Shown here piece after piece: positions 31,801 to 37,800 of a stretch of DNA of 64,000 nucleotides. This DNA comes from Botryllus schlosseri (taxonomy: Eukaryota), in assembly GCA_051294905.1 (NCBI GenBank), contig CM119380.1:23126001-23190000 (forward strand), given 5' to 3'. The notes under the pieces are model-generated. The model searched no databases and had not been told where the DNA came from. It saw only the letters and a program-made list of their open reading frames with translations. A program made the position numbers and the translations under genes. The number at the start of each line of letters is the position of its first letter. Positions within the stretch are counted from its first letter, which is position 1.

Positions 31801-34800
31801 CAGTCTGAAGCTCAATCACATTGACCTACTAAAGAAATGATTTTTAGCCACGTTGTTCAGTGTGTAGACAGAAAAATGGAACTTCGATATATAAAAAGGC
31901 TGCCTTCCGTTTGAAATGGGTATTTCGAATCGATGACATGTCGGACATGATACGCAACTCTCGTGATTCATCGGTACAAATAATCACCAGTACCCGGCTT
32001 GTACTTAATCTGTCAATGTTTGAGCAATGGTGTACGTCGACTATGTAAAGTTCTGTATTTGTCTTGATGGGTAGTCTTTATCTTTTATTTTCTGGGGAAA
32101 GTTTCAAAGTTGGTTACGCTGAAACGGTATTTTTATCATATTCCATAAATTAGGAACTGAAATAGACGTGACTTGAACTCGGATTGAAGTTGTTTTCCGA
32201 ACGCCACCTGTATTTACTTGACTTTGTACGCTGTTTGCATTGCCCGGCCTAGATTGTAATTGATTGCGTCTCGAAAAAGATCACTGTTGCAGCATGATGC
32301 AAATGATGATGAATCGCGCGTTTCGGCGGCTTCAAGATTTTTCGCGAATGGCAATATCTGATATGTGCTGCTCGCGAGAGGCTTGCCGAGACCGATTTTA
32401 CGAGGCTATTAGACATGATTTTTGCATTATCTGATTTCAAGGTGAATTTCCCGATGAGTGAGCGACGGATTGCCCGTTTTGATTTACTAATGCGGGCGCG
32501 GGCAGATAGATTCCCACAAAAGCGTTACCAGATTCGTTTTAAAACATGTCGGTGTACGATTACGGTCGGTTTACAAAATAAAATGCCGTGAGCGTGTGTC
32601 AAATCGGGTATCGTACAATGTGCGCTTTAAAAGGTTTTCGCGTAGCTTTTACGAACGCGCGCTATCAATCACACACGGCTTTGGGCGTTTATGCTTTTAA
32701 AAAGTTTACGCCGCCTGGACGCGATTAGAACGACAACCGCGCGATTGATTGACGACGTCGAGCGTTAGCGTGATTTGGTGTTAAAATTCTCCAAATGCCT
32801 TTGCCAGGAATTACTTTGACGCTTGATGTGCTGTGTAGTTTGCTTGGATCTGAATGATACCGCCCGGGCGTGGGCCGGGATATATTCTTGTTGAAATTAT
32901 GGACGACGCCGGCTTTAACGAGGGAAAACACGGAGCAGGCAGCGCTGATTATATCGAATACAGTATCCCGCGCACCAGTAAAGTTGAGTACACCCCACCG
33001 TCGCCGACCACCAGCGGCTACAGCGAAAGCGGTAGCGAAATGGACAACCACGACAGCGGGCGGGCTAGCGAATTGGAAGGCAGCCCTAAAGTACACCCCA
33101 AAAGACCCGACAGAATCACTCTGGGGTTTGATTTGCTGGACCGTATCGACTTGTCTTCAGTGAACTCGAATCAGTCATCAGGTCTGGTGTCTATAGAAGC
33201 GTCCGCATTGCGGACTCTAGTGTCTTCGTTAAAAGACACAAAAACAAGGCTTGAACATATGGAGACAGGAATGGAGGTGCTTATTAAAGCTTTAGCTCTG
33301 CAGAATAAGGTTTCAAACGAAGCCGTTTTTAAGTTATCGCGGACTGTTATCGCGCTAGGCGCGGATTTTAAGAATTTTAAAGTCGCGCACGGTTTTGAGA
33401 AGGGTATCGGTGATCGGGATACGGTGATTCGTAGCGGGGATGTTGCAGCGTCGACGCAATCACCAGATCGCGAAACCGCGACTTTTCCGCGGTTCGCTAC
33501 TGAATTTAAGAACCAGCACGTTTCGACGGCGATACCTTCAGAGGTCGATGTCGAATCGTACGACAACTTCCAAGACCGGGGGTCGAAGGTCGCGCCGGAT
33601 TTGGACGCTGCCGGATACGACGTGCCTAGAGTTCATGTTTATGCGCGCGTGCGCAAGGAACGGTCCACGGACGATATGTTAAGCGGCCCGCCGACTTTGC
33701 CAGGGCGGCCGTCCGACTTTAAAGAGATTGCGGACGAGGAATCTCGCAATTTGGAAAAGCTAATGAGCGAACTAGAATTACCCGGAACTGGACTGTCTAT
33801 GCGTAATCGAGATGATTTTTCTGGCGGTGACAGCTTGACGAGAATATCCCGATTTTCGGACGTTGAAAGCCTGATGTCAGCGTTCGATAACGAGAAGAGC
33901 ATGTTTTCGGACGACGAATTCGACACCGGGAGCGAGTTCGATTGTGACGTCACAAGTCCGTCACATAGCGTGGACGCGCCTACCGCGCTGCGCAAAGACG
34001 CCGAGGTTTACACCTCCAGCGTGATAATTCCGTCGCGGTCCCAGACATCCATCGAAGGCTCGCAAAAAACTGCCGGTTCCGCGCCGGGCGCGAAAATATC
34101 TAGCGGGCTGCTCGCTAATTACAAGAAGCTGTTCAAACGGAAGAGTAAAAAGACGCGCGCCGAAAGCGGGACTTCGTTTACGTTCGTGACGTCACCGCTG
34201 TACGAGAAAGAACTGGAACGAAATCCACGGAGAGAGAACAAAAAACTGAAGAACGGACTCAGCGTAGAGAGCGTAATTTCCGGCAAGAAACTGAGCGCTT
34301 CCGGCGCGTCGGTTTTGTCTTCCAGCCGTGAAAATGTGGACTCCAGATCGCGCGTAAGCGCTGATTCCAGTAGAGGCTCTCCTCGCGCCCTGCGTGGCTA
34401 CCGCTCGCCAGCGAACGCTCAGTTGCTGCGTTTGCAAAGCAGTGAGAGCGCGGGCGACACCAATCATACGCGCGACGCCCAGAACAATGCGGAAGCTTAC
34501 GATAACTTTGCTAGTGGGCGAGCGGGAAATTTTCCAAACGGAAATACCGGGCACGACCGGTTCGCGTCTTCCGGGTTTTTGACCGGATTCGAGAACGCGT
34601 CCGGCAGCGGACTTGCCACTGCTGCCAGGCGCGAGGCGTTTGAGGATAGTAAACTCAGTCATTCCGGGTAAACATTAGCATTCTTTTTTCCGGGTAGAAT
34701 TTTTATTCTTTTTTGCGTATAGAATATCTCGTGCGCGCTGGAAATCGCTTGCTTTACATTGTTTCGTTAGAACGCGGTTTTCGATTTGGTTGTAACTTCG

Positions 34801-37800
34801 TCCTTCGTGTTTTAGTGTCATCTTGGACAAGTTGGAGCGCGAGCAAGCGGACAGACTGCGATTTGAACAAGATGAACCCCCGCCTAAGGTAAGCACGTGT
34901 GCTGTATTTAAACGCAGTCGGCGTGTCAATTTTCTTAGGTTTTGTTGGCAAAGAATTCAGCTGTCAACGGTACTCCTCGGAAATTGAATACGCCTACGAT
35001 GTCACAATATCTATAATTTCGCTGCACGCCCGTGCGACTGATCAGCGATTGGTTTTTCCGAGATAAGACAACTTACTGCACGTGCACACAAAGAGTTGGA
35101 TAATCCTCGCTGTGTTGTATTATGCTCCCGTCGTAAATAGCGTCATCAATTAATTTCAATACGAACTAATTTCATGTTGCAACGTGAAATTAGCGCCGTT
35201 TACCGCATTTTTACACTCGGAGATGCGCGCGCCAGGCACTGTATTTTGCTGCCGGAAACTGTTGTCAATAAGTGGCAGCTGCCCTTTCACCAACAATAGC
35301 GGATTGCGGATTTTACACCTCTCCTTTAACGCGTATCTGACAATGTTTGTCCTGCTCGCGGAGTAGGAGTGCTCACTGCTCACACGTCTGACACTAGTGG
35401 GCTTATTCAAGACGAATTGCAGTGCGTGATTGACATCAGGTTACTTGTAGCTCAGGGCAGGCAACCTTTTCTTACCAACTAACCATACGTGATTACGCAG
35501 ACTTTGAACAAAGCGTTTTGAGTCAGGCCGTGACCAGGTGTATGATTTTTCCGTTTATATTTTTTGGGCGATTTCGACATCTGTTACGTCAGCGGGAAAA
35601 TTCGGTTGACGAATAGTAGATACGTTGAGCGTGATGCGTGCGTCAAGGTGAACGCTCCGCGTACAGGTTTTTATATCAGCGGCAGACAGCAATCATACAA
35701 GCGCTCACGTAACCGGTGCACTCTACGTCATCTCAGCAGACTGGCGCTTTAAAACTCTTTTCCGGCCATTAAATCATGTGCAGCGAATGAATAGCGATGC
35801 GATGTGGCTTTGAGGAGCATTCCCAATAGGAACTTGTTGACAGTATCGAGAATTCGCGCCGAGGCCCGTTTACGGCTTTGGTTGGGGTCGGCGTGCGTTT
35901 CCTGTGTGGCTTTCCTTCGCTGTGACGTGACAAGTGTTATTAACTGCGTTACAAGCGATTTGACGCTAGCGGTTGAGAATCGTTTTGGAGTTGTATGGGG
36001 TGTTGCAGTTGCAGTGAGCAGACCTTGCTGATTTTGCGGATGAGTTGAGATCGTGTGACAAACGTCTGGGTATAGGAAGGATAAAAGAATGATTCAGTCT
36101 ATGACGAGACAGCTTACGACCTTGTTGGATTGCGATTCTTGTCCGAACAACGTAGATGGAAATTCAGTATTGCGAATGTCCTTCGATAAATGCCACGAAT
36201 TTCCTTGGTTAAATACCACGATTTTCGTAAGCTTTACGGAGAAAAGACCACTGTTATTACGCTTGATATCAGTAACCTCACTGAGAGTATTCGCATTCTA
36301 ATTCACTCGAATGGATTCTAGACTTCAATGGGCGGCCGTGAAATCTTGTTCAAAATCAGTGTTGGTGCGGACGCATCCGCTGATTCCATTTCTTACAATC
36401 CACTTTAGTCATGCCCAGCGCTTTGTTAGAAGCCAGGACCGCTTCAACCAGGCGCGATTTTGCAATAGTAAAGTACCGGCGCGTGACATTCGGTAGATCA
36501 TCAACTTTCGGCACAAGTACGCTTACGCCGTGCATTCGATAGCTTTCGAGTAGGTTCGCGGTTAGCAATAATCGCATGAGATGTAGTATGATATTGTAGT
36601 TGTTTATACTTTGTATAGATATTTATCAAGGTAGTAAGAGCGCGCTGTGTTTACCCACCTGTTCCGACGAAATGTAGAGGACATCTTTCGAAAAGTTGTT
36701 GCAGGGCGCGCTTACACAGGGTTGGATTTAGAGTCCGTTTGTTATTAGATCAGTTCTTGTTAGCTACGATTTCACTTTGGTTTCTGTGTTGACAGTCGTA
36801 TTCATAACATTACGGCGCAGTTTAGGTACAAATATGAGGATGTCGGTTGTGATGCCGAGTCAAAGCGGTACCGACAAGGCCGAGGTAGATATGGAAGAAT
36901 TGGCGAAACTGGACGAAACCCTGCAGATGCTAGCGCAGGTGTCGCTGTCTCTGCGCACGGCGCGCCCTTCCTTGCGGCGAAAGCGTTCCAGCAGAAAAGC
37001 AAGCTTCAGAAATAAGGAGCAGTACGACACTCTGCCTAGCAAAATCACTCAGCACACCCCGGCACCGTTTAGCTACACGCACGGGCCCGTCGCGTTTCCC
37101 TGCGATATCGCGCAGTACGCCACCGTAGTCCGCGCGCCGCGCCGCAATAGCGCGGGTAAAATCACGAAACTAACCCGACACAGGCCGCACTTGAAGGGAA
37201 AGGTGAAAATTGAATACGCCCGCGGGTTTGAGGCTAAATTTGAGAGCGAAGTGTTATCGCGTATATTTCCTTATACAGCCCAGCAGGCCGGGATATCCGA
37301 AAGACAGTCCGCGCTCAAGCGTCAATCATCCCAACGGTGGCTATTCGCGAGGCACGCCAGCGGTGCCGCCGAAACAGAAAGTGTTCACTCCGGAGGTAAG
37401 TCGGACTAAAATTTTTCAGCTTCATCAAATTAGATTAGAATTATAGCTTGTTTTTTTTTCGACTTAGATTTGAATTACTTAATTTTGGAAAGCTTTTTCG
37501 AATTCCGAAATACAATAAAAATCGGATATCTAGTTTAAGATCTATCTAGTCAAAGATATCCCTGGTCGGTCGTTAGACGCTCGCGTTTTGCGCGGGTACG
37601 ATCACGTGACTATGCGTTCAGGAACTGGCCAACCACGAAGCGCAGGAGAAGTTGCGGCAGAAGCAAATGGAGGAGGTGCTGCTCCAGCAGACGCTGACGC
37701 AACAGCAGCGCGAAGCGGCCGAAAACGAGAAATGGCTTCAGCAGGAGGAACGGAACTTGGTAAGCGCGCATGCTACGAAACGATATTCAACCGATCGCCG

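Follow-up and report, generated by a model that had tools for sequence, protein, structure and literature searches.

A tunicate-conserved first coding exon in the FAK gene that probably yields a kinase-less, FRNK-type protein

The focal adhesion kinase (FAK, PTK2) gene of the tunicate Botryllus schlosseri probably contains a tunicate-conserved alternative first coding exon, from which a locally started transcript would give a kinase-less, FRNK-type product of 945 amino acids. We analyzed 64,000 nucleotides (nt) of contig CM119380.1 (assembly GCA_051294905.1, positions 23,126,001 to 23,190,000 of the forward strand), referred to here as the window; all unassigned coordinates are window positions. 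The exon is formed by an open reading frame (ORF) of 605 codons at 32854-34671 (+). This ORF is a real coding sequence that is expressed and under purifying selection. It is spliced in RNA to the first exon that follows the FAK kinase domain, and the same arrangement is found in six species.

Layout of the FAK gene and the modelled product

The signs of FAK lie on one strand of the window: Pfam PK_Tyr_Ser-Thr matches at about 8.6 and 9.9 kb, the proline-rich motif PSRPGYP and Focal_AT matches at 40.7-42.1 kb, together with the sequence YAEI in exon 2656-4896. The intron after the last kinase-domain exon (10743-34815) is 24,073 nt long and carries the ORF at its 3′ end. Because a TGA stands in frame immediately 5′ of the ATG, translation must begin at 32854, and the ORF exon ends in TCC GG/GTAAAC, a phase 2 boundary. 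The parts of the gene that concern this transcript are as follows (a slash marks an exon boundary).

10650..10742, plus strand: last kinase-domain exon of FAK; start approximate, donor ATCGG/GTGAGC between 10742 and 10743
32854..34667, plus strand: alternative first coding exon of 604 codons and 2 further nt; donor GG/GTAAAC; identified from the ORF, an RNA joint, homologs and selection
34668..34815, plus strand: 148-nt GT..AG intron, spliced out of the RNA in runs X1 and X4; acceptor ttttag, phase 2 on both sides
34816..34888, plus strand: first post-kinase exon, common to the canonical and ORF forms; joints from 34667 and 10742, and on to 37279
37279..37395, plus strand: shared exon with the PSRPGYP proline-rich motif; RNA joints and model
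37622..37759, plus strand: shared exon; joint from 37393/5 to 37620/2, with a loose end that resumes at 39435
39435..39489, plus strand: shared exon; RNA loose end and model
39552..39646, plus strand: shared exon with the second proline-rich motif; model
40707..40856, plus strand: FAT exon 1; Pfam Focal_AT, profile 1-42, E 5.5e-8
41208..41397, plus strand: FAT exon 2; Pfam Focal_AT, profile 44-105, E 2.2e-16
41924..42129, plus strand: FAT exon 3 and stop codon; Pfam Focal_AT, profile 108-132, E 6.4e-7

In the modelled join, the ORF exon and the eight downstream exons give 945 codons plus a stop, with GT..AG at all boundaries. The product has both proline motifs and a complete FAT domain recognized by Pfam, and no Pfam domain in the ORF exon; it lacks FERM and kinase domains because the ORF joins downstream of the last kinase exon. 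An mRNA of the ORF form would continue through the normal FAK tail exons and encode a protein that lacks FERM and kinase but keeps the docking sites and FAT. A preliminary description of this DNA had placed the 605-codon ORF at 32854, where we find it exactly, and had predicted a product of about 945 amino acids with the proline-rich region and FAT, which the exon join reproduces to the codon. Its statement that the first post-kinase exon has no Met is borne out by the translation of 34816-34888.

The exon is transcribed and spliced to the FAK tail

RNA contigs from three public runs (X1, X2 and X4) span the ORF. Contigs from X1 and X4, which come from two studies, follow the ORF to 34666/7 and resume at 34815/6, so that exactly 148 nt are skipped; depth across this intron is zero in both of these runs. 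X1 also has zero depth in every other intron of the stretch that it covers, and X4 and X2 show a low intron background at 36.5-37.1 kb. The phase-matched donor 148 nt before the first post-kinase exon, predicted from the letters alone, is therefore seen in use. Two outcomes had been named in advance as contrary to that prediction, namely transcripts reading through to the TAA and polyadenylated before 34816, and an ORF that is not transcribed; we found no such read-through, and the ORF is transcribed.

The canonical join is also in use, since an X2 contig starting at 34815 carries 29 preceding letters that match window positions 10713-10741 exactly, as expected for splicing from 10742 to 34816. 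Word depth in the ORF is 10.9 (X1), about 27 (X2) and 29.1 (X4), compared with 57.9 (X1), 153-185 (X2) and 135-163 (X4) in the shared exons, so by this rough measure the ORF form makes up roughly one fifth. The downstream joins are supported by RNA contigs up to 39435, and the remainder to the stop codon is modelled.

When the window was shuffled 200 times, its longest open frame had 160 codons on average and at most 272, compared with 605 for the ORF, which is single-copy in the 495.5-Mb assembly. Among the 20 best-supported single-nucleotide polymorphisms in RNA contigs within the ORF, 13 are synonymous and 7 non-synonymous, against an expectation of 24% synonymous (p = 1e-4). Over codons aligned with the closest relative, the proportions of non-synonymous (pN) and synonymous (pS) differences are 0.32 and 0.78, with pS saturated.

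Separately, RNA contigs in the region 37426-38283 have numerous joints of non-canonical type, along with loose ends (37446-8 to 38098-38261, with inserted letters). They look less like splicing than like an expressed repeat whose copies at several loci were assembled together.

Conservation across tunicates

A word-based search found two homologs of the ORF; a full HMMER profile search, run against 1.84 billion representative proteins, brought the total to five, with no other hits. The ortholog search called for in the preliminary description thus yields five homologous ORFs at other tunicate loci, one of them from the ascidian Clavelina lepadiformis. They are 568-877 amino acids long, and all five begin with a Met that has an in-frame stop 2-25 codons upstream. 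Each ends in a phase 2 GT donor (GG/GTATAA, GG/GTAAAT, GT/GTAAGT, CG/GTAATT and GG/GTAAAA), located 165, 1087, 575, 623 or 1076 nt before the phase 2 acceptor of the FAK exon equivalent to 34816-34888. No kinase exons turned up in the 7-10 kb upstream of the relatives' ORFs, and the location of these ORFs is accordingly given with respect to the post-kinase exon alone. No public assembly gave an exact match to the 605-residue product, no Pfam family was matched by the ORF or by any of the six homologs submitted, and a feature search of the ESM Atlas with the ORF returned only scores below 0.8, which is noise.

The conserved donor bears on a caveat raised with the original prediction, that any ORF ending in G TAA mimics a phase 2 donor. 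In the closest relative the frame runs on past the donor GG/GTATAA, yet homology ends precisely there, and the caveat loses its weight because the break coincides with the donor despite the open frame. Together with the phase 2 GT donor kept in six species, this removes the objection. A public gene model from Clavelina shows the same join: CAK8691158.1, an 'unnamed protein product' of 786 amino acids, joins the homologous ORF to the post-kinase FAK exon. The annotation of that locus (L003 10001-20668, GCA_961645235.1) splits FAK into at least two models, one of them a separate 428-residue Focal_AT gene.

Motifs and predicted structure of the head region

The segment encoded by the ORF, which we call the head, appears to be mostly disordered. 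An AlphaFold2 model of the whole exon, built on a six-sequence alignment, has a mean confidence (predicted local distance difference test, pLDDT) of 44, and only a helix at residues 116-178 is usable, with a few short, weaker helices besides. The head contains four elements of interest.

32989..33090, plus strand: most conserved motif, PSPxxSGxS..SE.D.HDSGRxS..E.SPK, residues 46-79; invariant columns in the six-species alignment, clustered in residues 49-79
33181..33393, plus strand: long helix, predicted parallel coiled-coil dimer, residues about 110-180; AlphaFold2 helix 116-178, pLDDT 81-95
33640..33657, plus strand: YARVRK, residues 263-268; Y263, A264, V266 and K268 invariant in six species
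34117..34158, plus strand: basic cluster, residues 422-435; K424 and K428 invariant, short model helix at 417-428

When residues 100-190 were modelled as two copies, they formed a parallel, in-register pair with i-to-i contacts every 3-4 residues. The two-copy fold score was 0.37 compared with 0.00 for the best control, the partner pLDDT was 80 and three runs agreed in at least 87% of contacts. Of 30 proteins solved as pairs of one chain, 21 attain the score mark applied here; of 23 solved as single chains, none does. The model supports a parallel dimeric coiled coil in this segment.

The most conserved motif is also conserved at the DNA level in all five relatives. Residues D67, S68, G69, R70 and S72 are invariant in the six species, within a region of pLDDT below 50. 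DSGxxS is the pattern of a beta-TrCP phosphodegron, and the DSGRxS of the head, which matches it, is a candidate degron by this resemblance. The sequence YAEI is the autophosphorylation and Src-SH2 site of FAK at Tyr397; the invariant YAxV of the head resembles it and is a candidate SH2-docking site. Scattered basic residues within NYKKLFKRK are invariant in six species, and YDNF/V, which matches the pYxN pattern of Grb2 SH2, is confined to the three closest species. All of the motifs listed in the preliminary description are present (the helix beginning LRTLVSS, YSIP, YDVP, YARV, two YDNF motifs and the basic cluster), but YSIP and YDVP are not conserved, while YAxV and DSGRxS are invariant. 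If these readings hold, the head would be a dimeric, turnover-controlled module, and the product may act as a FAT-targeted scaffold or as a competitor of full-length FAK.

The FAK gene has other large exons of similar character. Linker exons 1-1335 and 2656-4896 are lineage-specific, long, Ser-rich, disordered and Pfam-less, and like the 605-residue exon they carry short motifs (YARV, YAVV, YAVI and DDVF); unlike it, they lie internally in the kinase-bearing form. We looked for paralogy between the 605-residue exon and these giant exons and rejected it, as there is no detectable homology (best E 1.9). Exon 1-1335 (+), the FERM-kinase linker, carries SLYARV, DVYAVV, DVYAVI and DDVFVN, and from these motifs it is possible that it shares binding partners with the 605-residue exon.

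The 5′ end of the transcript

Conservation and base composition upstream of the ATG make a local promoter likely for the ORF transcript. The relevant elements are listed here.

32406..32636, plus strand: conserved non-coding block, candidate promoter, about 200-450 nt 5′ of the ATG; 71% identical to the related locus L001 (6996-7230) across 240 nt
32833..32838, plus strand: acceptor-like gtgtag, candidate spliced-leader or 5′ untranslated region acceptor 15 nt before the ATG; from sequence only
31037..31378, strand unassigned: conserved non-coding intron block, 70% over 351 nt to L001 5175-5513; stops in all frames
28878..28943, strand unassigned: conserved non-coding intron block, 80% to L001 2563-2627; stops in all frames

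The candidate promoter block is non-coding in both species, shares TTTAAAAG at 32628-32635 with the closest relative and falls in the top CpG bin of the window (32251-32750, observed/expected ratio 1.91). Transcription would begin locally, with the promoter in this conserved, CpG-rich block at 32.4-32.65 kb. The two blocks further upstream are candidate regulatory elements. We considered the upstream conserved blocks as exons and rejected this, given stops in every frame in both species; a leader-exon donor near 32608 was also dropped, being supported by no joint and not conserved in the closest relative. The window as a whole is CpG-rich, with a mean observed/expected ratio of 1.24 in 500-nt bins, unusually high for an animal gene body.

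The best-surviving alternative, which we nevertheless regard as unlikely, is that there is no dedicated promoter: a spliced leader would be trans-spliced between 32838 and 32839 onto the long FAK pre-mRNA, and the isoform would be a processing choice. Tunicates are a group that trans-splices. The gtgtag site lies 15 nt before the ATG with no ATG in between, and three ATGs occur further upstream, within the 185 nt before the start codon; similar AG sites are found 10-15 nt before the ATG in L001 and L005. X1, the cleanest run, has its first contig start at 32876 with no coverage upstream of that position, whereas the runs with intron background are covered there, one X2 contig beginning at 32673. 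Three points weigh against trans-splicing as the sole explanation: none of the loose ends listed bears a spliced leader; with a donor upstream at 10742, cis-splicing would be the normal fate of such an acceptor and would bring a stop five codons into the exon; and the conserved non-coding block and CpG peak suit a promoter. The two ideas are compatible and can coexist as a promoter followed by an outron, so that the mature 5′ end of a locally started transcript may arise by spliced-leader trans-splicing at the acceptor about 15 nt before the ATG (32839).

Other readings of the ORF and points against a locally started isoform

A second alternative, to which we give little probability, makes the ORF an internal cassette of a giant full-length FAK, with splicing in frame into an acceptor somewhere within the ORF. 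Since GG in phase 2 closes both upstream exons, reading would continue through any phase 2 acceptor inside the ORF; the window and the closest relative have a weak AG in common at codon 41/42, and very large linker exons already occur in this gene. Set against this are the in-frame stops found 0-25 codons before a Met in six of six species, the scores of all internal phase 2 AGs (at most 0.55, none with a pyrimidine tract) and an RNA contig that is unbroken from 32876 across the candidate AGs, with no such joint listed. In-frame use from the kinase exon is unlikely because there is no AG with a pyrimidine tract and the contig is unbroken.

Just as improbable is the reading that the intron merely houses a nested gene of its own or the ORF of a mobile element, with its splicing to FAK incidental: although the ORF has no Pfam family or known homolog and the Clavelina annotation has a separate 'unnamed protein product', a mobile-element origin is rejected by the single genomic copy, the place before the same FAK exon and the splice phase are kept in six species with introns of 148 to 1087 nt, the spliced joint is seen with no read-through coverage, and the Clavelina model itself contains the FAK exon.

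We therefore favor an alternative first coding exon of FAK with a local start, and several points weigh against it. The runs were labelled 'RNA?' by guess; that they derive from RNA follows from their contigs, which lack four GT..AG introns. A raw-read RNA run, X23, had 17 reads only and was uninformative. Contigs of the ORF extend 28 nt beyond the junction, and because they stop there the continuity from the ORF to FAT on one molecule is taken from the shared exon graph. Upstream of the ATG, as far as 32673, coverage is at intron-background depth only (X2 and X4), and no cap, spliced leader or start pile-up is readable at the 5′ end of the RNA contigs. As for the head, few eukaryotic cases served to calibrate the dimer test, its behavior on predicted chains is untested, and the degron and SH2-site readings are resemblances of motif.

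Comparison with FRNK and PRNK

In the mouse, the intron right before the Met693 exon holds the Frnk promoter together with its unique non-coding exon (PMC10082854). Chicken, mouse and human have the same FRNK layout, and PYK2, the paralog of FAK, has the corresponding PRNK; the authors of this comparison take it as a sign of internal starts being ancient in the family (PMC1570463). The same paper aligns human TILEEEK..ERM(693)RM...APPK/PSRPGYP with Ciona IILDDV...PPPK/PSRPGFP, and because the segment is so placed, exon 34816-34888 is the matching exon of the window. From this alignment it is plausible that intron 10743-34815 corresponds to the vertebrate intron that holds the FRNK promoter; the exon numbering in Table 1 of PMC1570463 cannot be reconciled with the position of Met693, and the match proposed here is one of approximate intron position.

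Like the ORF form, FRNK is a product of the FAK gene without FERM and kinase that retains the proline-rich region and FAT; it starts from the intron just before the ILEEEK...PPK exon, as is predicted for the ORF form. The two differ at the N terminus: vertebrate FRNK has a non-coding leader exon, begins at the internal Met693 and is about 40 kDa, whereas the ORF form has 605 unique residues and a length of 945. The FRNK promoter has also been shown in chicken and mouse, whereas that of the ORF form is only inferred. The combination that marks FRNK, translation from a Met inside the shared exon after a leader that does not code, is absent from the ORF form, which is a variant of FRNK rather than a strict ortholog because its first exon codes for 605 residues and 34816-34888 has no Met. 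PRNK is likewise a kinase-less C-terminal isoform; unlike the ORF form, it has no long unique N-terminal region as described in PMC1570463. The duplication that gave FAK and PYK2 postdates the tunicate branch, so PRNK is vertebrate-only (PMC1570463).

In the literature that we found, descriptions of FRNK come from vertebrates alone (chicken, mouse and human). Full-text searching for FRNK in tunicates yielded nothing but a phylogeny paper of 2006, and a search for focal adhesion kinase isoforms in ascidians returned nothing relevant and no published description. The locus offers expressed, conserved evidence of kinase-less FAK tail proteins in the closest invertebrate relatives of vertebrates. 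A wider proposal, which we put forward tentatively and with considerable doubt, is that kinase-less expression of the FAK tail predates vertebrates and started, in the tunicate-vertebrate ancestor, in the intron before the ILEEEK exon; that tunicates keep short and long forms; and that the head of the long form is dimerizing, degron-controlled and a mimic of Tyr397 SH2 docking, making a regulated scaffold. If this were true, the long form would be more than a plain dominant negative, and would work at adhesions as a scaffold under regulation. The 600-residue head provides testable modules for dimerization, turnover and phosphotyrosine docking, and both the origin of FRNK-type regulation and the role of a non-catalytic FAT scaffold become testable in an electroporatable chordate embryo. 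Gene models are corrected as well, as in Clavelina, where the locus is split into the 'unnamed protein product' and a separate FAT-domain gene.

A second alternative first exon

The intron that follows 34816-34888 contains another exon of this kind.

36834..37202, plus strand: second alternative 5′ coding exon, 123 amino acids; spliced in frame onto 37279 over a 76-nt GT..AG intron; X2 and X4 both show the joint

It opens at the ATG at 36834 and ends in AAG/GT at 37202, and its joint is of low depth (8.8 in X2 and 5.5 in X4). The start of the encoded sequence, M[RK]MS...E.EKL[ND][DE]TL..L..VSLSL, is conserved in Clavelina (L003 17709-18011) and in a third species (L005 20202-20477), and the annotated 428-residue Focal_AT gene of Clavelina starts 6 nt after the match begins. 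This exon predicts a kinase-less form of 439 amino acids, nearer to vertebrate FRNK in size. The locus thus seems to make canonical FAK together with long and short tail-only forms.

Other features of the window

Downstream of FAK, an intact ORF of 582 amino acids at 52680-54428 (-) matches DDE_1 / DDE_3 and HTH_psq, as in a DNA transposase of the pogo/Tigger type. A frame of 483 codons at 62551-63999 (+) runs off the end of the window; it has weak matches to retroviral aspartyl proteases (RVP and gag-asp_proteas, E about 5e-4), and a retroelement probably begins there. An interspersed repeat family is represented in several introns, at 18527-19143, 22442-22976 and 39915-40211, by recurring short strings of identical translation.

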